Assembly: GCA_002104905.1 (NCBI GenBank)
Contig: MCFE01000376.1
Coordinates: 1 to 64,000 of the forward strand
From: Basidiobolus meristosporus CBS 931.73
Lineage: Eukaryota > Fungi > Basidiobolomycota
Length of the DNA stretch: 64,000 nt
Direction: 5' to 3'
Shown: positions 2,213-50,957 of the stretch, one piece after another
How the letters are laid out: each line of letters starts with the position of its first letter
How positions within the stretch are numbered: position 1 is the stretch's first letter
Notes under the pieces: generated by a model
The model's database searches: none
What the model was told of the DNA's origin: nothing
The model's input: only the letters and a program-made list of their open reading frames with translations
Translations under genes and position numbers: made by a program

Positions 2213-3222
2213 AGTTTATTTTTCAGAATGGGAATGCCACGTACGCTCTAGACAAACTCATGATTGTCCGCACTACCACCCACACCAATCAACCCTCCAA
2301 GGCTTGTTAAGTCAATAATTACCGATGATAATGGTAACAGCGCTCTCATAGGTGTCTGGAGGGACGTTGGTGGTAATCATTTCTTAATTTAAAACGCATC
2401 AGCATGTGTTACCAGGGCCGATTCAGGCAAAAGTGCCATTTCAAAATAGGGCCCATCCACTGATTACATGGCGCATGAGAACACCGTTGTGCGAATGGAA
2501 GTTCCGGGTTTCGTGGGTCGCCCTTCCCCAGGTCTCGAAGGAAGATGGTTTAGGAAACGCTGAATATTCATCGAACTTTCCGTCGGTCGCACCGCCGAAA
2601 GAACAGGGCCCAAATCAGAGGATTTTTATCAAAGCCCTTTCCTTTTTCTACGGTTTGGGTTTGAAACCGAATTCAACAATTAGGTTTGTCCAAACCACCA
2701 CACCACCACACCGCCAAAATAACCTGGATCTCCGTGGTTATGGCATTTAAGGTATTGGTCCCCTGTACTGCTCATTTATCCAATAGAGGCATCGCTTGTT
2801 CGGGAAATATTGCATTTTAAATCATCACAGTGTCAATCGCACCCAGGGATTGGTCCAAGTTCGGCCATCGCGAAGCTTCGTTGAAAACACGCGATGGATC
2901 AATTGGCTATTTCGCCTGATCGACACCAGCTGACACTAACTTCATTTACAATCAAATAGGAATCATTTCACGGCACAAATAGACGATTAATTGATTCTGG
3001 AACATCTCAAATACCAACTTTATCTTAAACCGTTTTGCTAGGTCCAGTTTTGGTAAATTGCCAAAGTAATTTTTCTTAAAACATATGATAACTAGCGCCA
3101 GATGCCACAGCCTCGATAATGCTTAAAAGGACGTTTCCTCCCTAGTCGAATAGCTCATAACTAGTTCTAATCACTCTTCACCACTCTGCTCATTCCCTCG
3201 ACTCCTCCTCTATTTGGCTAGT

Positions 3223-4281
3223 ATGAGCTTTCCCGCTAACTCTGCAAATAGTCCCACACAGTATATTCAAGCCACCCATAGCACCTCACTGCCAGCAGTG
3301 AATTATATGCAAACCGCCACTCCACCCCCTCAAGTCAACAACATGAACTCGATAAGCAGTCCAACCTCAGCCAAGCCGTCGGCCGACAAAAACTCGCTAC
3401 AAAGCAAAATCATCAGTCGAAAACTAAAAGGCTACCTATTTGAAGACTCCATCCGCGAGTTCAACCCGGAGAAGCTGTACAAAACCAAAGAATCCCGCAA
3501 GCGGGAGATATACAAGGTCCAAGGGGTGAATCTTCTGAACCGCGACGATATCGACAGCAAAACCGCCATCGAACGGCTGCAGAAGAGAAGAGCCCAGCAT
3601 AACCGTGTTGAGCGTAGGAGACGCGATATGATCAACAGCGCGATCGAAGAATTGTCCGAGATCATTCCCAACGCACAACAAGACAAATTCGCCCGGAGTA
3701 ACGTACTTCGTCTAGCCATCGAGTACATCAAGGAGCTTCAGGTAGAGGCTCATAACTTACGCAGCGAAAATGAAACCTTGAAAAACCCACAAACACTAGT
3801 GCCCCGCCTTGATCCCTCCAAAAAGCCGCCCACCATCATCGTAAACTCGAATGGTCAGAACACTTCCCAATTCCAGCCTACTCTATCGGCTGGCTGGGTG
3901 CAGGAGCCAAAGGCCCCTTTTACAGCGTCCTATGGGCTTCCTGCCAGTCCAGGCGATCAAATACACATGACTTCGCCTACAGGATACCCCTCGCCATCGT
4001 CAGCCAGCTATTTTGATAAGCCTCGACACCTTTCTCTTCCTAGCCAATTTTACTCGCATCCTTCTACCCCACCGATATCTATGGGCCAGGCAACCATTGA
4101 TTCCCAGCCTGATAGCATGATGCACAACCACTACCACACTCGGCATATGTCCATTCCCAACGTTTCATTACCAAACCCCGGCCTGGCCCCACCCATGCCA
4201 GCACATGGTGGATTTCATTCAGCACCTTCCTCACCAAGTGATGCCTCGCAGCATCGTCATTCAAGCTACTTTTCGCAGTAG
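3223..4281 (+). CDS. bHLH-ZIP transcription factor, CACGTG E-box class (Cbf1/USF/Rtg3-like), single exon
   Basis: QHNRVERRRRDMINSAIEELSEIIP...RSNVLRLAIEYIKELQ followed by a leucine-zipper-like stretch. H/E/R basic-region residues are present and the SREBP Tyr is absent. First ATG at 3223; the ORF track starts at an upstream TTG. Confidence 0.92.
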   Translation: MSFPANSANSPTQYIQATHSTSLPAVNYMQTATPPPQVNNMNSISSPTSAKPSADKNSLQSKIISRKLKGYLFEDSIREFNPEKLYKTKESRKREIYKVQGVNLLNRDDIDSKTAIERLQKRRAQHNRVERRRRDMINSAIEELSEIIPNAQQDKFARSNVLRLAIEYIKELQVEAHNLRSENETLKNPQTLVPRLDPSKKPPTIIVNSNGQNTSQFQPTLSAGWVQEPKAPFTASYGLPASPGDQIHMTSPTGYPSPSSASYFDKPRHLSLPSQFYSHPSTPPISMGQATIDSQPDSMMHNHYHTRHMSIPNVSLPNPGLAPPMPAHGGFHSAPSSPSDASQHRHSSYFSQ

Positions 4282-5159
4282 AATCCAACCCATGACCCCT
4301 CATTGAGGCGGAACTCCAGCGAAAGAGTTGGTACGTATGACGGGATATTTAGATTATCGTCGTGACACCAACATTTCCCAGACACGCATCATTGTAATAT
4401 AGTAAGGCTGACTTCCACCATCACAATGTATAAATTGCCAAACAACAATATAAATTAATCATCCCGATTCAACCAAATATCTGCCCACATTGGTGCTTGT
4501 GCCAAAAACCCACCATTGTACAGCTCGGCTCTTTGACAAAGATGCGGAAGGTTCCATAGAGCTCATTGAATTTAACCCATTCCGAAACCTTAACTTGCAA
4601 TATTCAATACCGCTACTAGCCTAGTCTAAATAGAGCTAATAAGATATAGTTTGGACATATGGTTCCCATGGACAACCTGATTGCTGCTCATTTCAGTAGT
4701 TGAAGATATTGCTGTACTACTATGCCAAGCCGAAGATAACTCTAATGCCGGGAATATTCGGAAGCGAACGAAGAATCAATCAGACCAATGGCTAAAGCAG
4801 CTCATAGGCCAGCCGAATTGAGTTAGATACCCCTTCATTCGCTGCCAATATTCTGGGTGCAATGAGTGATTTTCAAGATAGCCTCTATATCCGGATGATC
4901 CGATTCTTCCAAACCACAGAAAATAGCCAAATTACAGTGGCTTGATGAAAAAGGTTCTTAGATGAGCGATTTGTGTGTAAACAATATTAGTAATATGCTT
5001 TAGATTCACCATAAGTTATGATGATAAGTTGGCTGCGATGACAAACAGGTGATACGAACAAACTGATCGATAAGTGTCTCCATTTCCGACTTTTTGTACT
5101 CTTCCCAAATCACTTGGCATTGCCTGTCATTGTATGCGATTATTCTTTAAACAACCATA

Positions 5160-7115
5160 TTGCCAATGGTCCTTATCAATGGGATTAAATATGCATGCGA
5201 AACATGTATTCGAGGTCACCGCTCGTCGTCCTGTAGCCATCTGAAACGACAACTCTTCGAGATCAAAAAGAAAGGTCGACCGGTTACCCAATGCGAACAT
5301 TGTCGTGAGCTGAGAAAAACCAAAAAGATCCACGTCAAATGTATATGTGTCAAAGCCGAGCTGGAAGGTATTTCCCATACAACTCTTCCCCTCCCCCGAA
5401 AAAATCTCTTGAACACTTGAGCTGACGTTAGCCGAACACTTCTTATAGATAAACCCGAACCGGGAAAGATCACCTTGGATTTGGAAAAGACAACCAAAGG
5501 CTTGAAAAAGAACGAGAAATTCCAGGGTTTGCATTCCCGTCGTTTTGACAGTTGCCGTGAGTGCGGTTGTGTTAAATTCTGGTTTGATTTAGTCACTTCC
5601 CTTCTGAATCCTTGCCGCTGCTCCGAAGGTTTTCCTTGTAGGTGTTGCACCGTCGACGAAGGCTTTTACTCCGACATGATTGCCGCTGGTATGGACTCGG
5701 CTTCTATTAAAGCCACTTTAGACAACGCAAACTCGTGCTCGACCAAGTGCAAATCTTGCAAGTCAGGTTGCAAATCCCGGTCAGAGACTGCGGACCATCG
5801 TGAACCCACCCATTCTCAACCAAACATAGCTCTCCCATCTAATACCAGCTGCTGTTCGTCTGCAAAAAACAAAGAGCCAAGTGAGGCCAGGCCAAATAAC
5901 GGGTTGACAAAAAAAGTGGAGCCGACAGTTGGTCAAAATGACACGACAATTACAAGTACACAGCCACCCAGCTGCTGCTCCCGGAAAAAAGAATCCCAAG
6001 AGGAACCTCCAAGTGCGTCTGAAGTTGAGACAACTAAAATCGACCCTAAAAGTGAGTGGTACCGTAATAGACGACGTTGTCCATACATTAACAAAGCTTC
6101 CCTTTAACTCAAAACAGAGTCGGAAAGAGCTAAGCTCATCACGAGTTTGCAGCAGAGCGTTCGTAAACAAGAGACCAATCACAAAATAGCCTGTAAGTTC
6201 CAACATATCGAAATGCATCCGAGGTGTTTTATGAGTAACCGTTTCGCCCATAGTGGAATCGTTGATGAACCCCTGTCGTTGCGGCGAAGGCTATGGATGT
6301 ACATGTTTGAGCATTCCAGACAAATACACCTTCTTTGCCGAGTTTGTTGGGACTGGAATTGATATGGAAGCACTTGAACTCAATTTGCAGTGTGGTAGCT
6401 CATGTGGTGTGAAGTGCAAATCCTGTAGTACCAAATGTTGCGGAAAATCATCTAAGCCGCCCAACAATATAAACCCAACCCTTGACACCAACGAATCCGA
6501 CTGTACATCAGCAGATAAACTCCCTCATCCCCCACTCGATCAAGATCCAATAGCTCATGGCTCTTCAAACGATCAAGCGATGAATTCTAATCCAACTTAT
6601 CCCAAGCGATCCGCTAAGGAGGCTAATCTTGATGATCTTGACTCCGTTGACAATAGCCGACTCATACAAATGGTGTATAACAGTGTTCAGCCAGGTAAAA
6701 CCTGCTGCCAACCCCAAGATGAGATTGGTCAACCCAGCAAAAAGCCCAAGGTCGAGGCTGCACCGGTGAAAAATTGCTGCGCAAGTCGTAGCGATGATAA
6801 AGACTCTAAGAAGGACACCGTTGCTTCCAACTCATGTTGTGGGGGCAGTGACAAGAAAAATTCCAGCGGCTGTAGCTGCTGTTTCGACCCAGAAAACCCA
6901 ACCTTCTACACGGACACAGATGGGATTCGAACATGTGGCTGCGGCTGTAACAAGCCAGCCTTGGATTGTAGTCATTGTCTCAAAGATTTGTGCGAGGGTA
7001 AGTGCATCCAGTCTTCCAACAAATTTCCACATCTGGTAAGCTAATATGTTCTCACACAGAAATCATCCTCAAGCCACCGTCTTCATGTCGGGTCTCGCAT
7101 TCTCTTGGTGAATAG
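5160..7115 (+). CDS. Copper-fist (Ace1/Cup2/Mac1/Haa1 family) transcription factor with extensive Cys-rich C-terminal modules
   Basis: N-terminal ACETCIRGHRSSSCSH...KKKGRPVTQCEHCRELRK..HVKCIC. Predicted introns 5368-5448, ~5527-5592, 6052-6117, 6193-6253 and 6998-7059 give a continuous frame ending LGE* at 7115. Confidence 0.9.
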
Positions 7116-7261
7116 CATGTTGATTAGTAAATAGAACAAATAATGGGGGATTAATGATGGGAATTGTAATACGGATAGATTCGCAGAAAAGGGAACTAGA
7201 ACATCAGTTTATTGAAATATATATAACAGGCATCGCTTGTTTAGAATAAAAGCCGCCTTCT

Positions 7262-9489
7262 TCAAATCTTCGACAAATCGCGACCAAATAGAGCTCGCTT
7301 GGTCCAGTCCATAGATAGAAGAAGTCTGGTTCGTGTGGACACCTGTTCACTCCAGTAGATACTGCGCCACAAGTACACCGCACCAAATCCGCTGATGTGA
7401 TGGCCTTGACCAAAATCTGCCACCGCCGAGCCGCCAATATAGGCTAGAGAGCCCAAGTGTGAGTAGTGGAAAGGCGGATATTGATCGTCAGCCTCGACAC
7501 CAAATGGGGCGTTGTCGGCGCGTGAGGCCAGCGAATTTAATTTCCGAGCCATGTACTTCCCCTGCTGACTTGCTACTTGTGCAGTAGCAGGGAGAGTCGT
7601 CAACTTGGAATCCACGTACTGAAGTAGCTTCTTCAGCTCGTCGAGATCCAACTCCCCAGATTCATCCTCGTCGTACTCATTGAAGAGGTCGCGCAACTTG
7701 AGCAGATGTGCTCGCGTCTGGGGGTGCTTCACACTCATTTCCTCAGCCATCAAGCGGAACTCCTCGAAATCGATGGTTCCCGAATGATTCCTGTCGGCCG
7801 CTTCGAAATATTCTATCATGTGCTCGACGAAATTTGGGTTCTCTACAGTGCTACAATCGCCCAAAGCGTATACCGAGCCATCGGGAATGCCCTTGACACG
7901 GAGCCGATTGTCAGTCTCGAGTGCTCGCTTGTTTTTTTGCGCCTCCAAGCTCTCACAAAGCCTCCTGGTGATGGGCTTCATATCTGCAACGGAGCGTGAG
8001 TATGTGCATAAAGTGTCAACCATATGGGCGCTGATTCCTACCAATTCCTGTAGACCAGAGACACACACCAAATGGCAAGGTCTTTTGAACAGTTGTGCCA
8101 TCCTTCTGCTTTAGTGTGTAGACTATGTGATCTTCATGGACGGATTTCACGCGGGCCAGCGTTATGACGTTGATACCACTGCGCTGAAAGTGCTTCTCTG
8201 TGTAGGTAGATATCTTCTCATCGTAAGTGTTGAGGATGTGGTCACGCGACTGGATGACTGTGATTTGGACTTTTTCCTTCAACTCAGGCGCGAACTAAAA
8301 GGAGGTGGTTAGATGCCGGACACTTTCGACGAAGCATGCAAACCCATACATAGCTCACTAGATCCTCCTCGACAAAATCGTACAGCTCTGCGGCAAATTC
8401 GACCCCGGTAGGCCCTACAGCAACAAAAGTGAGCACCGGTGGTTTAAATTCCGCCTACACACCAAATACCTCCGCCGCATATAACGAAGCTAAGCAGCCG
8501 TCTTTTCTCCTCGTCTGAGGTGGTTGGCAAGGCGGCTTTTTCGAAATTGCTCATGATTCTCTTTTTCAGGTCGCGCGCGTCGTCAATGTTCTTTAGAAAG
8601 TTACAGTGCTCGATCCCCTCCACTCCAAATGTCATACTCTGGGAGCCGACTGCAATCACCAACTTTCACGGGGGTGAGTACGCCATTGGTGAAATGTCGT
8701 GGCAACTAAGATCAACTTGCCTTATCATACGGAAGGTAAAACTCTTTCCCGTCAACACCCTTGGCCAGGACCATCTTACTGTCATAGAGAATATCCTGTG
8801 CCTCGGCCTGAATGCGCATTAGTTGGCTTGATATGGAATCGATGGGTCGGCTCCCCTACCTGAACGAATAATGCCTTGAGAGGTTGAATGATTTTGCGTA
8901 CCGGCTCAACCAAAGAGCTGAAGGGAGGTATAAGCATACTTGTTTGCGCCCAGGGTTCGCGGCGTCCCACTTACCGTAGCTCTAGAGTTCCGACCGTAGC
9001 GCTCGGCAGGAGAGGAGTGAAAAGAAAGTAGTTATTGGGGGAGACAACTGTTACGTCGTATTTCTCCGTGTCCAATTCCTTCAAAAGAGATATAGCCTAT
9101 GGGTTGAGAGTGAGCACGCTTTAGCTTCAGTCGTTTCTCCCAAAAACTGACGGAAATCGACTTACCCCCCAGCCGGAGCCTAGAACGACTAAACGTGGCT
9201 TAGCTTGCTCTTGCCGATGCACTATTGGCACAGCCGCTGGCCCTTGTTCCAGATAAGTCTTGACATTGAGCATGGGCCGTTTGTGTTCAAGGAAGTAAGC
9301 AAGAAGTCCCACCCCGAGTACTGAAGCGGAGGCTAGCTTAAACCAAAGAGACTGGAAGAAGGGTTTATGGCCAAGGGAAGACAAGGGAGCTGGAGCCTGC
9401 TGGCGTGTTTGTGCACATTTTGCTGGGGAAAAAAACCTCTTGGTTTGCTGGAGGGGGGTCTGGACTTTCTGGAGGCCTTGACGAAACAT
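7262..9489 (-). CDS. Type II (alternative, external-type) NADH dehydrogenase with two EF-hands, multi-exon
   Basis: Mitochondrial-like presequence; [10 protein letters not shown] and FVICGGG Rossmann motifs; EF-hand loops [12 protein letters not shown] and [12 protein letters not shown]; [14 protein letters not shown]; C-terminal [35 protein letters not shown]. Confidence 0.95.
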
Positions 9490-10094
9490 AACTTGGTAAA
9501 GGATGGTTTATTTCAGCAGCATGAAGTGGAAATGGCATGAAATCAACGGACTGCAGCTACGTATTGAAGCTTAGGTCATCATGCTGTCAATCATAGGTAT
9601 CAAGAAAGGCTTGAAACTCGCATATTAATCACATCGCAATGATACAGGCAGTATTTTGAATGGTCGGGCAAACTTGTTCAGGAAAGACTGTCTCGGAAAA
9701 GGATTGTTCTCGTGTAACACGCCAGTACTAGACTGTATTCTAATCCGGTCATCCCAACAGCGTAGAACCATGCGTATAGCCAATAGCCTTCCGGCGAGCC
9801 ATCTTCCCAACCATCGATATGTTAGCCTATATATGGGCATGATTAAAAGGGAGAGTATAACCATAGATATATCACACTCTGGCCGAAAGTGGATTATTCC
9901 ACCATTTTGATGTGACGATCTGACCAACTCAAACATTGTTAAGAGTACCCTCCAGCAAAAAGTTAAATCCCGTTTCAATTGGATATATTGAGAAAATTTC
10001 GGAGAATCAAATAAAAATCTGGAGGTGGAAAAACTTGCTTCAAGTTATAAATTGCATGGTACACTTTGGCTTCTATCCACCCTTAACTCCTATA

Positions 10095-11733
10095 ATGCGT
10101 AAACTTCTTACTACCCTCCTTGTAACCCTATCTCTGACTCTTGGCAGCGAAGCTGCGAACAGTTGTTCCGTAGCTGGGGACAACAAATTTCCGGAGCAAA
10201 TAAGCGCGGACCTGTTGAAGCCGATTTCTTCCTTCAGTGTGGAATATTTTCCCAGCTACAAGATTGTCACCAACAACAACAACAAAGTCTCATATCGAGT
10301 CGATTGCAACGAGAACACCGGCAATGCGGAACATTTTGTTTCGTTAAACAAGTTGGGCTCTATCAGTGCTAACTTGAAGACCATCGGCTTCCTTGAGGTA
10401 GGCTGTTCTCCCCATTCATAGCAGTTTCGCCGATTTTAATGTGAGTTTCTTTCTAGCTCCTTGGTGTTGAGCAAAGAATTGTTGCCATAACCGCCCCGGA
10501 TGTAGCCAACCAAGTCACTTCCGCCTGCGTGAGAGCAAGCCTGTCACGAGCAACCGGCAGCGCAGAATTGACATTCTCCGAGAATTTAAGTCAGCCCAAC
10601 ACGGTGGCCTTCGCTCTAGATGACAACATGACGCCTTTGCAGGTAAAATACGGCCATTTCATAGCCCAAGGAAAGCGCTAAACCATCTTCTATAGAAAGC
10701 ACAATGGATTCTTTTCGTGGGTGCGATTCTGAATCTCGATAAAGAGGCGGAAGAGATCTATCGTCAAATCGAAAGCAGCTACCTTTGTCACAGGAGCAAT
10801 CTCAGTAAAGTCAATAAGCAAAGCATCGCGTGGATCCAACTTGTAAATGGCAAATACACGTTCAAGAACAGCTTCTACTACGAGAACTTGATCAACGATG
10901 CAGGTATGAAAGCATCCACCCACCATTGTCCGAACGCAGAAATACTAACCGCGAATTTATCAGCTGGAAAGCCAGTCAAACCATCTCAAAATCCAATCGG
11001 CGACGTGGCCACCTTTCAAAAGGAGATGGGAGATACCCCACTTGCTGTAGATGAAACATTGTTGGATGATATCAGCATGAGCACCTGGCTCACTAAATAT
11101 GGCATCGATGCGAAAGACAAGCCGTATCTCAACAACCTTTACCGAACTGACAAACTGATCGTCAATGCCAACAAAACCATCGTATCTGGTACTGCGCTTG
11201 TCTTGGCTTTGGTTTTCTACGATATGTACTGACTGACCTCTGAATCATTAGATTGGGATCAAGTTGCACCAAGTCGCCCTGATCTTGCCATCCAAGGTAT
11301 CCATTGTTCATGTCCGGTCTCGCCTATTCCTTAACTCACCCAAGTATTTTATTCAGACCTAATTTCGGTGCAGTATGGTGATTACCAGCCAACATACTCG
11401 CCTAGATGGTTCATGAAGCTCAACACTGGATTCCAGAGAACGAATCTTGAGAGTGCTACCTGTGATGCCAGTCGTAACCAAATCCCGCAATGCATGGTGG
11501 CTGAGTACAGTGCCATCAATATCCCAGTGGTCGGAGGATCTTCGGGCAAAAAGAGTAATGCTGGAGCTATTGCCGGAGGAGTAGTGGGAGGAGTGGTTGG
11601 CGTACTTGCTATCGGAGGAATCGTTTTCTACGGGAGAAAGAAGTACCGCCAAACCGGCACACAGGACGGCAAAAAGCAAGGTTGGGACTTCATCAGCCTC
11701 AAGAGTGGCCGCTCCACTACCTCCTTGGCATAG
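10095..11733 (+). CDS. CBA1: CBA1-like (cobalamin acquisition protein 1) / periplasmic-binding-protein fold type I membrane protein
   Basis: Signal peptide MRKLLTTLLVTLSLTLGSEA. Spliced motifs FSVEYFPSYKIVTN, FLE|LLGV, VTSAC, TPLQ|KAQWILFVGAILNLDKEAEEIYRQIESSYLC, DWDQVAPSRPDLAIQ|DL and YSPRWF. C-terminal TM AIAGGVVGGVVGVLAIGGIVFY followed by a basic GRKKYR tail. Introns ~10398-10456, 10643-10695, 11189-11251, 11297-11356. Confidence 0.7.
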
Positions 11734-12139
11734 AGAAACCATGCCCACCTCCAACTGTTTATACCCATGCATTTCATTGTTGCACTTTCAGTACTTAGCT
11801 TTTGTCACTAGACGTTCGGAATCTCTATTACATAGCATTCTTGAAGATTCGATTGGATATATTACAATAAACCATTGATATCCCAATACGGCTTAGGGGC
11901 TGGAATCATTTATTAGAAGTAACGTCTCTATTTACATCCCTCTGCGTGCGAAGGACAGCAAACAACAAACACATTGGTAACTTGGTAAGGCAAATCTATG
12001 TGTATCGCGAAAAAAGGTTTATAAAAGTCTCGTTGATATCTGGGTGAACGTATCGAAGACCACACCATAGGCTCATCGAAATATGCGTGACATTTGCTAT
12101 TTGGTCGACATTTGAATGGGAGATGGGTATCCATCAGGA

Positions 12140-12865
12140 CTATGGCATCACGGATACGTAGAGCGTCTCGACTGCATCCTGTATCAGTTCAGTGTCGGCA
12201 GTTGAAATCTCCCACCAAGCTTTCCCGCTTTTAACCTCGAACAGAGTTTCCTGCATAACTTGGGAGCTCAGGAAAACCGACACCCCGGCCAGGACTTGGG
12301 GTGGGTACATCAGACATAGAGGGGTCTTGATGAAATCGTTTGTGAATGCAATTGCCGACAAAGCCTGCTTTGGGGTGGCAGCGCACCGAGCAAGGATCTC
12401 AAATAAAAAGCTGTATGGTAGCTCCAAATTCAAATCGAAGCACAACGTCTCCAAAACCAGCTCTTCATGGTACAGAATGGTCTCTTTCCACCGACGGAAA
12501 TCATCCGAGTTCTCGTCCACCTTGTACGCGTCGTCTTTACGAGCTTTGCGCACCGATATAGTCACCACGTCTCGTAATCTACGCCCCGTTTCCTCTTCCT
12601 TGGATGCCAAAAATAGGCACGTTCCTGCCAGATCATAGTGGTGGTAGGTTCTAAAGCTGTGCCGCATGTAAAACCGCTGGAAATAGATTCCGGCTGTGTA
12701 GATTGTTGTGGGTGGAAGCTTGAGCGTCATTCCTGCGTTAATGATGAAATTGCCCCCTTTCGCACGAAGAATCCGCTCATTTTCCCAAGGCATCCCATCA
12801 AGTATAGTTGGTGTTTTTGCCATGTCATTCTGCGAGAAAAGCCATTGATTGGATTTCGAGCTCAT
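12140..12865 (-). CDS. Transcriptional cyclin (cyclin K/T, Pch1/Bur2-like)
   Basis: QWLF..TPT..DGM...ERILRAKGGNFI...YFQRFYMRHSF...AGTCLFLASKEEETGRRLRDV...EELVLETLCFDL cyclin boxes. The extreme 3' end could include an extra exon. Confidence 0.9.
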   Translation of the reverse strand: MSSKSNQWLFSQNDMAKTPTILDGMPWENERILRAKGGNFIINAGMTLKLPPTTIYTAGIYFQRFYMRHSFRTYHHYDLAGTCLFLASKEEETGRRLRDVVTISVRKARKDDAYKVDENSDDFRRWKETILYHEELVLETLCFDLNLELPYSFLFEILARCAATPKQALSAIAFTNDFIKTPLCLMYPPQVLAGVSVFLSSQVMQETLFEVKSGKAWWEISTADTELIQDAVETLYVSVMP

Positions 12866-28375: not shown

Positions 28376-30949
28376 CTATAAAAGGAATACCTCAAGGAGC
28401 CCTTCAAGCTCCAAAGGTGGCTCGATTGCCACAACATGATGATCGGGTATCTGCTTTGGGTGCTCTCCGGATGGGAATACCGAGCGCAGCACTGAGGCTG
28501 CTTCATATGGTTTAACTTCGTTCGAGATGGTGCCCACTGTGATATGCAGAAGTTTGCTAACTGCTGGCATATTCTCATGGCGAAGTCTGGCCTTCAAAAC
28601 CATCAATTTGTCATTCCAAATCAAATGACTCGCTGTCACCGTCACTGACGGCTTTGCATTGTCTTTCATAAAATTCTCGTAATAATCAAACAATTTCTGA
28701 TCTTTCAGCGATCTTTGCCCATCTCTTCTATGGACCAAAGTGATATGGTGGGGAATCTTGATGCGATCCTCTGATACCAGCTTGTGGAAAAACGTAGCAT
28801 CAACATCAGGGTGCTGAGTGAAATACACCCGAAGTACATCCGGAATGTGATTCAACAATATGGCGAAATAGCCGATCTTCAGGCTCGTAAATGAGTTTTG
28901 ATCTTTCCTGAAATTTGGCTTGTAATGAATAGCATGGTGTAGAGCTGCCTTGATCTTTGCTCCTCCAGGCTTCTGTCTATCAAGAAGTGGGCAGAGGGTG
29001 TCAAGTGCAGTCTGCAAATTAGTCTCGGCGTCCGCAAAGGGGTCCAGCTGAATTACTTCTGTTATTAAAGAGTCTGCATCTTGGTTAGGATCCACTGGCA
29101 CATATTCGTTCAAAAATCGGCCAAGGATAGACGGGAATCCTTTGGTTCGCATTGGTGTAAGTGATTGGTGGTTTTCCCCACGCGAAAGCAGTCTTCGATA
29201 GACAAGGTCGTATATTTTGTCGGGGGGATTCGCTCCAATAGACCAATGAACAGCTATAACGCTGGAGCCTGGATACTTGCTGAGAAAAACGTTGGTGAGG
29301 CCTTCTCTATTTCCAGGGATATGGTTGTTTCTACACACAAAATTGTGACTCTTGAGTAACATGCTCAGGTGGATCCGAAACAAGCCAATGCATACTTGTC
29401 CGCAAGAACGATGTCGTTTTGTTCAAATTCAGCCATGACCGCCTTTTCGAAGGCTATCTTTTTCTTTTTCTTCGACCCCAGGTTGTCGTTCTGAACACAC
29501 TTGAATCCAAACAGCTTGGACAGAGCCAAGAACAAGGTTGTCTTGCCTAGAAAATACCCTTTCAATACACTGCCATGGGGAATCGATGCTAGCCTTTGTA
29601 TTGCAGTTACCACATCCCGGAATCGCGACAGAAAAGATGAGGGTTTTCTTCGGCCCCTTGGGTTTCTCCACCACCAACGACATATTCGGGTTCTTTTTGT
29701 ATTCCAAAAACATATTTCGGATCTTAATGATTCCGATCCCTTGAGTAAATGTCGTGAAAAGCTCCGGCTCCGTGTCAAGCATGTATTTCACCCAGATACC
29801 ATAATCCTTCGTGAGCTCGTATCTATGTTTGTAGGGCTGTCCTCGGATGATACGAAGAGTAACCTCTCGCCACTCTCGGTACATGAGATATGGCTCATCG
29901 TATTTCACCTTAAAGAAGTGGACCTGGTTCTTATCGGTTCGTCTGCATCTCACAACAAACCCTTCTATAGCGCGACCTTGGTACACTCCACTCTCTCGAA
30001 TCTCGTCTACGAAAGCGCGAACCTCACTTACTTGCTCCTTTGTTACCGAGCTCACTTCAAGAAACCCGAACTCCTGGGCACAGGCCCTCACCTCAGCTGA
30101 AGTCCACGTGTTGAGCTTCACCGAGTTGGAGTTAATTCCATGCAGATACATCCCAGAGCTTTCCATCGGATACTCAAGTACATGCTCTTCGAAAGTATCA
30201 TCACAGAGCTAACAAGTTGAATTGTTAATGCGGCTTTTCATATTAGTCCCGATAGCCAAAGCCGTATCTCACCTCGAATACTGCAGTGATGTCGTGTTGG
30301 TGGAGAAAATCGTCGAAGTCGTCCAGTGTTTTCCCCTTAGTACGTAGATGCTTTAGCAGCCACTCCTGACCTTTTTCCGAATGAGATATGGTTCGATTCT
30401 CATTAGGTCCCCAGGCGTGCTTGCTTGTTACCAGTAAGCCGCCACTCGGGAGGCTTGAAACAAAGATAATGCAGCCATTCTCTTTAATAGTGACTTCATA
30501 TGGACCTTGGGTATTTTGTTGGATCCAGTCCCACTACATAATGTTCGTTATTGACCGTTTCTACACAGGGGTCGCAATGCATATTTTGCTGCGGAATGGT
30601 TTGGGAATTGCATTTGCCATCATACCTCAGTTTGCTTAACCTCACCGATGTTGAAAAACTTATCGTAACCACGAATGACTATTTTGTGATGACCCTCTAG
30701 AGTGGTGGTGAATAGCCCACGGGCCAAGGTTGGAAAGGGGCAAGGATCTTGAGAGTAGAGGTACTCGGTAAACTTCCAACTTGAGATGGCCGTCCCCGAA
30801 GGGAGCTCATAAGTTTTACACCGAACAAAGCGTTTTTCCTTTTTCCCACCAGAGGTTTTTGGCTGACTGAGCTCAAGCAGCTCGTTTATCAGTTTATCTT
30901 CCTCGTCGAAGAGCGTAAGCTGTTCGGCACTCCTTACAATACCATTCAT
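28376..30949 (-). CDS. TRL1: Fungal tRNA ligase Trl1 (adenylyltransferase + polynucleotide kinase + cyclic phosphodiesterase)
   Basis: ARGLF, RGYDKFFN, motif I KENG, EGFVVR, FFKVKYDEPYLMYREWRE; P-loop AIPGC|GKTT; 2H motifs HITL and HITVGT. Confidence 0.95.
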
Positions 30950-38898: not shown

Positions 38899-40257
38899 TT
38901 AAACCCGGGGTCGGATCTTCTCCTTCTGCACCTGATCCATGGAGGATAACTTAGAGCCCATGGCTTGCACCGAGTCCGAGAGTAGAAGTGGTGAGCATTG
39001 GCCCTGGCTGCCGACAGGCAGTCTACCTGATGAACCCGGGAAATGGACCATCGGTGAAGTTGGGTCCTTAAGAACCAACGGAGACAAAGAAAGGTCGTTG
39101 TTCTCTGGAAGAGTCCGGAGTGAAGGCAAGGAGGTATGACGCAAAGGGTCGTCAGATCCTTTGTTCGACGGGGTTTCTTCTGGAATCAATGGTGGCGGTA
39201 GTATTAATGGGTCCATGCTTGAAGGGTTCATTTGCAGGCTTTGTTGATAAGGGAGTGGTGAGATCCCAGGGCCCTGCAAGGGAGTGATTGGCGGCAGTTG
39301 AACCGACTGCGGTGAATGTGTAAATGAAGATAGTGGGGTGTGTGCTTGAGTGAAAACAGGACTCCAACTGGGAGGAAAGGCTATGGGAGAATGTGAGCTA
39401 GCAGAGTGTAATGGTTCTATGGTCGTCGTGATTTTGGACACCGGGGTTGCTGAGAATGGTGGGGAAAATAGGAAGGCATCTTTGGACAACGAAGGGATTG
39501 TCCTGTCGATGAATGTTGTGCTGGGTGTCTCCGGAGTAAGGGGTACCGGGTTGGAGTGATCCGATAGATCGCTAAGCCGCCTTTCATCCTTAGGACCTCG
39601 ACCATCATTGATTGCGGATGGTACTGACTCTGAAGTGATGCGCGATTGGCATGTGAGTGATGGGATGTTTAATGAGAAGGACTTTCTACGCTTGTACTCC
39701 TGGACGACATCCTCCTGACTAGGATACGTCCAGGGCTTTTTCTTGCAGAGCAAGGATGCCTCTCCATCCGCATTTAACTGAGGGGATTTTTTGGGGCCGC
39801 CGTGCCAGGATAGCTGAGGGCGCTTGACTACGCGACAGTCAGAGATTTTGAGGATTGTGAAGCCAGGGCCTTTATCTTCGTTTTCGTCCTCTTGTTCAGA
39901 GTCGACAGGAACGATCAGCGGCTCCGCCTTCTTCTTCTTCAGGGTTTGGCGCTTGTTCTGGAACCATATCTGTATGGCCCTGGTACTCATCCCAAGCTCT
40001 TTGGCAAGCGACTCGCGCGTGGCAATGTCTGGGCGTTGGTTGATTTTGAAGGAAGACTCAAGAATGGCTTGTTCTTGCTTGTTCGTGCGTCTCCTTGTCT
40101 TCCGGGAAACGGAGCTGAGATCGACACTGGCGAATTCGTCGTAATTTGTATTTACCCAGTTAAGGCGCTCTGGGTTGGTTTCTTCTATGTCAACACCATC
40201 GTTCTCTACTGCCACTTCTGACTCTATGGGTAATGCATGGTTGCTCGGTTGACTCAT
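38899..40257 (-). CDS. Homeobox transcription factor (Yox1/Yhp1-like), single exon
   Basis: RKTRRRTNKQEQAILESSFKINQRPDIATRESLAKELGMSTRAIQIWFQNKRQ; Pro/Ser-rich C-terminus. Confidence 0.93.
   Translation of the reverse strand: MSQPSNHALPIESEVAVENDGVDIEETNPERLNWVNTNYDEFASVDLSSVSRKTRRRTNKQEQAILESSFKINQRPDIATRESLAKELGMSTRAIQIWFQNKRQTLKKKKAEPLIVPVDSEQEDENEDKGPGFTILKISDCRVVKRPQLSWHGGPKKSPQLNADGEASLLCKKKPWTYPSQEDVVQEYKRRKSFSLNIPSLTCQSRITSESVPSAINDGRGPKDERRLSDLSDHSNPVPLTPETPSTTFIDRTIPSLSKDAFLFSPPFSATPVSKITTTIEPLHSASSHSPIAFPPSWSPVFTQAHTPLSSFTHSPQSVQLPPITPLQGPGISPLPYQQSLQMNPSSMDPLILPPPLIPEETPSNKGSDDPLRHTSLPSLRTLPENNDLSLSPLVLKDPTSPMVHFPGSSGRLPVGSQGQCSPLLLSDSVQAMGSKLSSMDQVQKEKIRPRV

Positions 40258-49121: not shown

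Positions 49122-50957
<1,836 letters not shown>

Follow-up and report, generated by a model that had tools for sequence, protein, structure and literature searches.

An unannotated gene of Basidiobolus meristosporus encodes a predicted membrane-anchored protein of the CBA1 family

By what protein might an early-diverging fungus take up vitamin B12 (cobalamin), and could the gene for such a protein lie uncalled in a sequenced genome? The question is raised by positions 10095-11733 (+) of a 64,000-nucleotide stretch of contig MCFE01000376.1 from Basidiobolus meristosporus CBS 931.73, the whole of which we call the window. To our knowledge, the B12 uptake route of non-animal eukaryotes is still largely unknown; early-diverging fungi use B12, and we know of no uptake component that has been tested in them. 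CBA1 is reportedly the cobalamin acquisition protein 1 of Bertrand et al. 2012. In Chlamydomonas and Phaeodactylum, B12 uptake requires CBA1, which has a BtuF-like fold and a single transmembrane (TM) helix, with a signal peptide as well in the Chlamydomonas protein, CrCBA1 (Sayer et al. 2023, PMC10828217). An earlier note on this DNA, made from its letters alone, had proposed a CBA1/BtuF-like surface protein at the locus. We find here an intact, unannotated gene of six exons, whose product is a predicted membrane-anchored member of the CBA1 family.

No single open frame spans the region. When spliced it gives a product of 447 aa, and its five introns, 53-63 nt in length, are all canonical GT-AG introns. 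The spliced model is collinear over its full length, at 48% identity, with K7432_001110 of B. ranarum (P0003, 450 aa), its syntenic orthologue, and five of five introns occupy equal alignment columns and phases in that annotated gene. The full-length match and the identical intron positions and phases give strong support to the gene model, whose splice junctions rest on comparative evidence. In an exhaustive search with exon 1, P0003 was the only true relative.

All features of the gene lie on the plus strand. Exon 1 (10095-10397, aa 1-101) carries the signal peptide, the start of the N-lobe and the FSVEY..YKIV motif, and aligns with aa 6-103 of P0003. An alternative in-frame ATG at 10056-10058, 13 codons upstream, would add 13 aa; since it has no counterpart in B. 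ranarum, the start at 10095 is better supported. After intron 1 (10398-10456, 59 nt, GT..AG, phase 0), which agrees in position and phase with B. ranarum, the remaining N-lobe with LLGV...VTSAC follows in exon 2 (10457-10642, aa 102-163). Intron 2 (10643-10695, 53 nt, GT..AG, phase 0) leads to exon 3 (10696-10903, aa 164-233), which is 62% identical to P0003 and encodes KAQWILFVGAILNLDKEA, the inter-lobe backbone helix and the first strand of the C-lobe (SIAW, with W209). The motif TPLQKAQWILFVGAILNLDKEA straddles the junction of exons 2 and 3, and the splicing that the earlier note had done by eye was therefore correct. Intron 3 (10904-10963, 60 nt) is in frame and stop-free, and its retention would add 20 residues with the frame unbroken. 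We take it to be spliced because the letters TACTAAC at 10943-10949, 13 nt ahead of the acceptor AG, agree perfectly with the branch-point consensus, because DAGGSP of the orthologue aligns with DAAGKP across the junction, and because the intron position is equal in the two species. Exon 4 (10964-11188, aa 233-308) continues the C-lobe with AVDET and YRTDK. Between intron 4 (11189-11251, 63 nt, GT..AG, phase 1) and intron 5 (11297-11356, 60 nt, GT..AG, phase 1) lies the short exon 5 (11252-11296, aa 308-323), which is 93% identical to P0003; it encodes DWDQVAPSRPDLAIQ, a motif common to plant and bacterial relatives, in which W309 corresponds to W394 of CrCBA1. Exon 6 (11357-11733, aa 323-447 and the stop) completes the C-lobe, which runs to about 11424, and goes on to encode a stalk that contains Cys, then the TM helix and the tail.

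To place the product in a family, we analysed the joined 447-aa protein by local blastp, mafft and hmmsearch, with Pfam scanned exon by exon. The spliced model scored 69.2 bits (E 1.6e-23, Z=1) against a hidden Markov model (HMM) of the plant CBA1-like proteins P0007-P0009, 181 bits against an HMM of fungal proteins from outside Basidiobolus, and 33 bits against a bacterial Peripla_BP_2 (PF01497)-like HMM. In hhalign, the fungal profile matched the plant CBA1-like profile at 99.8% (E 2e-29, 327 columns) and the bacterial profile at 98.6% (E 7e-16), and a search of 5.8 billion proteins with the orthologue P0003 matched P0007 at E 2e-15. The plant HMM and hhalign results bear out the likeness to CBA1 that the earlier note had read from motifs. 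The plant HMM serves as a proxy for the family: its Logan-derived members are by eye near-identical to the Arabidopsis CBA1 homologue in the supplement of Sayer et al. 2023, and that study applied its own CBA1 HMM at E<1e-20. These comparisons place the protein in the CBA1 family, nearer to eukaryotic CBA1-like proteins than to bacterial Peripla_BP_2 proteins.

The relatives of P0003 form three groups, namely TM-anchored fungal proteins, the plant CBA1-like proteins P0007-P0009, and bacterial-type PF01497 proteins. The TM-anchored fungal relatives are H4R33_003271 of Dimargaris, DFQ28_006979 of Apophysomyces and BCR42DRAFT_189717 of Absidia repens, with local matches of 27-37% identity. Judged by its sequence, the gene belongs to this TM-anchored CBA1 form, which is common to Kickxellomycotina and Mucorales. 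It shares with these proteins their architecture, a glycine-rich TM helix and a basic tail, and differs from fungal CBA1-like proteins in its more diverged N-lobe and in its absence from public annotation. A profile word search did not reach algal CBA1; it did bring in two further proteins of bacterial PF01497 type, one of which its source calls an iron-complex substrate-binding protein. The bacterial or metagenomic PF01497 proteins P0011-P0013 contain the CBA1-typical PL.RAEW.K, DAGGS and RPDL..L, and may be the bacterial sister group of eukaryotic CBA1.

The features of the spliced product are those expected of a type I membrane protein, with signal peptide and TM topology taken from sequence reading and a hydropathy scan. 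The predicted signal peptide (aa 1-21, 10095-10157) consists of MRK, a 13-residue hydrophobic core and GSEA|A. The ectodomain has six Cys, each with an orthologue Cys at or beside the equivalent place as read from the alignment. The product has four N-glycosylation sequons and a single strong hydrophobic span, the Gly-rich putative TM helix (aa 391-415, 11560-11634), with a glycine zipper (GGVVGGVVG...GG) and a hydropathy peak of 2.28. It is followed by a basic tail, predicted to be cytoplasmic, of 32 aa (aa 416-447, 11635-11730; 7 K/R, 2 D/E) with the motif WDFISLKSGRS at 11683-11715, whose F-I-x-L-[KR] core aligns with FINLRNRNS of the Dimargaris protein P0005. Signal peptide, ectodomain motifs, C-terminal TM helix and basic tail had all been described in the earlier note, and all are present in the spliced product: FSVEY..YKIV.N is at aa 47-60, VTSAC at 121-125, and YLC, YSPRWF and YRVDCN also occur. 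The motif that the earlier note gave as DW....RPD...D is there as well (aa 308-323), with spacings of 6 and 4 residues rather than the 4 and 3 it had written.

Comparison by eye with CrCBA1 (Cre02.g081050) and its Phaeodactylum counterpart PtCBA1 (Phatr3_J48322) shows the same arrangement of a signal peptide, a BtuF-like two-lobe ectodomain and one C-terminal TM helix. The motifs in common with algal CBA1 are F.V.Y..YK.V.N, SPC, PL..A.W....,.AW, DAGG-like, DET, DW and RPD/QP.L...D. The protein departs from the family in a short N-lobe deletion, where other members carry a V-P-[IL] strand, and in the Y.L.QCG segment of CBA1, which reads YRVDCN here; the divergence that the earlier note had flagged at this segment is real.

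Neither exon 3 nor the family profile had a meaningful match in sequence searches of PDB, and for this reason a structure model was needed to reach the fold. The AlphaFold2 model of P0003 has a predicted local distance difference test (pLDDT) score of 73 overall and 80-93 through residues 50-360. Foldseek against PDB matched this model with class III binding proteins only (CeuE, YiuA, 4hn9; E about 1e-8). In VIA-align, the haem binder PhuT came first (Z 16.1, root-mean-square deviation 3.6, 241 aligned); the top matches also included YiuA (15.6), RhuT (15.3), ShuT (15.2) and BauB (14.9), with BtuF of V. cholerae at Z 13.6 and that of E. coli at Z 13.0. Judged by entry title, almost every one of the best 45 representatives (Z 10.7-16.1) is a protein of this fold that binds iron, a siderophore, haem or B12, after which Z drops to about 8 (FpvC, ZnuA-type proteins). 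The ESM Atlas neighbours were clusters from Streptophyta, Zoopagomycota and Mucoromycota (TM 0.68-0.79), then bacterial PF01497. The modelled structure confirms the BtuF-like, two-lobe fold of class III periplasmic binding proteins, for which the earlier note had proposed a check with AlphaFold and Foldseek. Like the bacterial class III (cluster A) proteins (BtuF; PhuT/ShuT/RhuT/IsdE; CeuE/YiuA/FhuD), the model has two Rossmann-like lobes and one long helix, with Z 13-16 over 215-262 residues. Unlike them, the B. meristosporus protein has a predicted eukaryotic TM helix and tail, and identity to them is about 8-15%.

Another way to view the protein is through the pace at which its parts have changed. 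The gene is the most diverged of its syntenic block, with a protein identity of 48-55% between the two species versus 63-98% for its neighbours, and is the sole member of the block without a blastn match. Within the protein, identity to the orthologue is 32% in the N-lobe (nonsynonymous divergence, dN, 0.69), 57% in the C-lobe (dN 0.35) and 33% in the stalk (dN 0.73), against 81% for the TM helix and 77% for the tail, which taken together have a dN of 0.11. The cyclin next door, by comparison, has a dN of 0.019. Because synonymous sites are saturated versus B. ranarum (proportion of synonymous differences, pS, 0.76-0.82), omega is not estimable and we used dN contrasts alone.

Like algal CBA1, the protein belongs to a genome that is listed with MetH. 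For B. meristosporus CBS 931.73, Table S1 of Orlowska 2021 lists methylmalonyl-CoA (MM-CoA) mutase (1), CblAdo transferase (3), epimerase (1), MeaB (1), MetH (2), CblD (1) and class II ribonucleotide reductase (5); it also gives MetH in Dimargaris and Absidia repens, both of which bear the TM-anchored form. The earlier note had advised a look for MetH, MM-CoA mutase and other B12 genes and had named the absence of B12-dependent enzymes as a reason to give up its proposal; since such enzymes are listed for this very strain, that objection falls away. Of the 16 highly conserved CBA1 residues in Fig. 8A of Sayer et al. 2023 (K78, P118, L136, E206, F214, F215, N216, E218, P251, V253, W255, G289, W394, F395, E396 and D408), placed by eye with the help of the CrCBA1 sequence that the paper's supplement gives, only six are identical here (K56, the counterpart of K78, L103, N176, W209, W309 and D323), and five show conservative changes (I174, L175, D178, I207 and Q311).

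On balance we lean towards the following interpretation: the gene is intact and unannotated, and its product is a CBA1-family protein with type I membrane topology, whose ligand is most likely a corrinoid and which is coupled to a partner. The signal peptide would direct the protein into the secretory pathway. The modelled two-lobe class III binding domain, with its rigid helix between the lobes, would face the outside or a lumen, and the cleft between the lobes would hold a large ligand, with a corrinoid as the likeliest candidate. Coupling of the loaded receptor to a membrane transporter, or to a sorting or endocytic partner, might then fall to the glycine-zipper TM helix and the conserved cytoplasmic F-I-x-L-[KR] tail. 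The earlier note was right on family and fold, and cobalamin as the ligand is plausible but unproven.

Several observations weigh against this interpretation. Public annotation of MCFE01000376.1 has no gene called between the cyclin and NDH2 genes, and the same is true of a second contig, MCFE01000552.1; a word search with P0003 returned no B. meristosporus protein either, from which we conclude that the gene is unannotated in the collections searched. Among the exons, Pfam Peripla_BP_2 matched only exon 3, at 15.1 bits (E 0.016, profile positions 98-163) and the orthologue P0003 at 23.5 bits (E 4e-5), both below the gathering cut-off of 27.5. The AlphaFold2 model was made, from a 7-sequence alignment, for the 48% identical orthologue and not for the window protein. 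The structural ranking puts haem, siderophore and other iron binders (Z 14-16) slightly above BtuF. Lastly, the protein lacks five of the 16 conserved residues (P118, where there is no proline, E206Q, P251, G289A and F395D), and of the four residues near the modelled B12 (W255, W394, F395 and E396) only the two Trp are kept, F/E reading D/Q.

The ranking and the lost residues would also be accounted for if family and fold were the same and the ligand another: a fast-evolving copy may have shifted to haem, a xenosiderophore or another metal complex from the gut habitat, with B12 left to other CBA1-like paralogues. We regard this as possible, if somewhat doubtful. The haem binders PhuT, RhuT and ShuT and the siderophore binders YiuA and BauB do all score above BtuF; however, class III binders all lie within about 3 Z units of one another, and gaps of this size do not discriminate between ligands, so we rejected ligand assignment by fold ranking as uninformative. 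The change of F395 to D beside the modelled B12 is similarly two-sided, as the F395 and E396 positions vary in other fungal and plant members too, including fungal members from MetH-containing species. An N-lobe only 32% identical between congeners, in the most diverged gene of the block, fits a change of ligand, as does the non-B12 role that Sayer et al. 2023 inferred for plant homologues. The match to the TM-anchored form of Dimargaris, Apophysomyces and Absidia, on the other hand, is easier to reconcile with an ancestral role than with a derived one.

That neither contig copy has a called gene, that no RNA run was listed, and that protein divergence here is the highest in the syntenic block, could also mean that the locus is decaying or silent and was left uncalled because it is unexpressed or no longer functional. 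We consider this very improbable, given a frame that stays open over six exons with canonical splice sites, an orthologue that is intact with identical intron positions (though synonymous sites are saturated), and ectodomain Cys that are each matched at or beside an orthologue Cys. The strongly uneven dN, 0.11 in TM plus tail versus 0.69 in the N-lobe, is a pattern of selection and not of decay. Least credible of all is a recent horizontal transfer of a bacterial Peripla_BP_2 gene unrelated to eukaryotic CBA1, for although Basidiobolus lives among gut bacteria and the PL.RAEW, DAGGS and RPDL motifs are common to bacterial PF01497 proteins, the gene has five spliceosomal introns in common with B. 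ranarum, eukaryotic CBA1-like profiles outscore bacterial ones, and the predicted signal peptide, stalk, TM helix and tail are eukaryotic in style and seen in other early-diverging fungi.

Returning to the interpretation of a corrinoid receptor coupled to a partner, the existence of that partner is suggested by a TM helix and tail far better conserved than the ectodomain. A plain anchor needs hydrophobicity alone, yet the helix is near-invariant and the tail motif is aligned in Dimargaris, which argues for specific protein contacts of the helix and tail. We put forward, tentatively and with rather low confidence, that the glycine zipper and the F-I-x-L-[KR] motif of Basidiobolus and Dimargaris form a docking surface for the partner of CBA1, be it a transporter or an endocytic or sorting adaptor. 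If this is so, then the TM-anchored fungal form would offer a direct handle on the mechanism by which CBA1 brings B12 into microbial eukaryotes.

The novelty that the earlier note attached to the locus was overstated. Sayer et al. 2023 had reported CBA1 homologues in Allomyces, Spizellomyces, Rhizophagus, Rhizopus, Phycomyces and Conidiobolus and had put fungal homologues forward for tests of B12 uptake; Basidiobolus is not among the entries in the part of their supplement that was available. The B. meristosporus gene is a further member of these already reported fungal homologues and, with fungal CBA1 in B12 uptake already in print, the gain is incremental. What is added here is the correct exon structure of a gene that annotation had missed, its orthologue and its place in the TM-anchored fungal form. 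We also add that the binding domain changes fast while the TM helix and tail are held under constraint, and this constraint gives a testable hint on coupling to a partner.

We also examined the surroundings of the gene for a partner transporter. In either species, the genes called in the surrounding 6-10 kb or so include neither a BtuCD/FhuBC-type ATP-binding cassette (ABC) importer nor a cobalamin gene, and none was found among the long open reading frames (ORFs) scanned across the window. The 241-aa cyclin beside the gene matches a protein of assembly GCA_002104905.1 exactly, and over the 2.5 kb compared the locus on MCFE01000376.1 and the window are 100% identical. Linkage of the genes for a binding protein and its importer is not expected in a eukaryote. 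In B. ranarum the order is basic helix-loop-helix (bHLH) protein, copper-fist factor, NDH2, CBA1-like gene, cyclin, amino-acid transporter (Aa_trans), aldo-keto reductase (AKR), cyclin and Exo70, of which NDH2, CBA1-like gene, cyclin, Aa_trans, AKR, cyclin and Exo70 are kept in synteny between the species. Where B. ranarum has the bHLH protein and the copper-fist factor, B. meristosporus has a 416-aa product without a Pfam match. At the DNA level, 3214-9489 of the window is collinear with B. ranarum L001:2775-9320, which there contains bHLH, copper-fist and EF-hand NDH2-type NADH dehydrogenase genes.

The second copy of the gene, on MCFE01000552.1, is 99.8% identical, with 5 differences in 2541 nt (window 9600-12140 vs L003:2814-5354); two of the five are exonic and both of these are synonymous. 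The duplicated stretch takes in the cyclin and NDH2 neighbours too, and it probably represents either a haplotig or a duplication that happened very recently.

Other matches to exon 1 (P0001, P0002 and P0004) were set aside as repeat-driven, since a stretch of ~35 residues was matched 4 to 17 times. They are repeat proteins of 243-1409 aa with 4 to 17 copies of a ~55-residue unit that reads ...PVFSVEWMPTKSL.SNSSTSVQCRMDA.KVSLQQQLNQ... and matches aa 20-74 of the query, and their similarity to it is probably due to these repeats.

Further along the window, at 25440-63731, the long ORFs scanned are housekeeping-like exons, two of ten without a Pfam match. The Pfam scan identified a tRNA ligase at 28376-30166 (-), a homeodomain protein at 38899-40257 (-) and a DEAD-box helicase at 49167-50957 (+), and among the other long ORFs of this interval a tyrosine phosphatase, a rhodanese, an F-box/leucine-rich repeat (LRR) protein and a histidine phosphatase.

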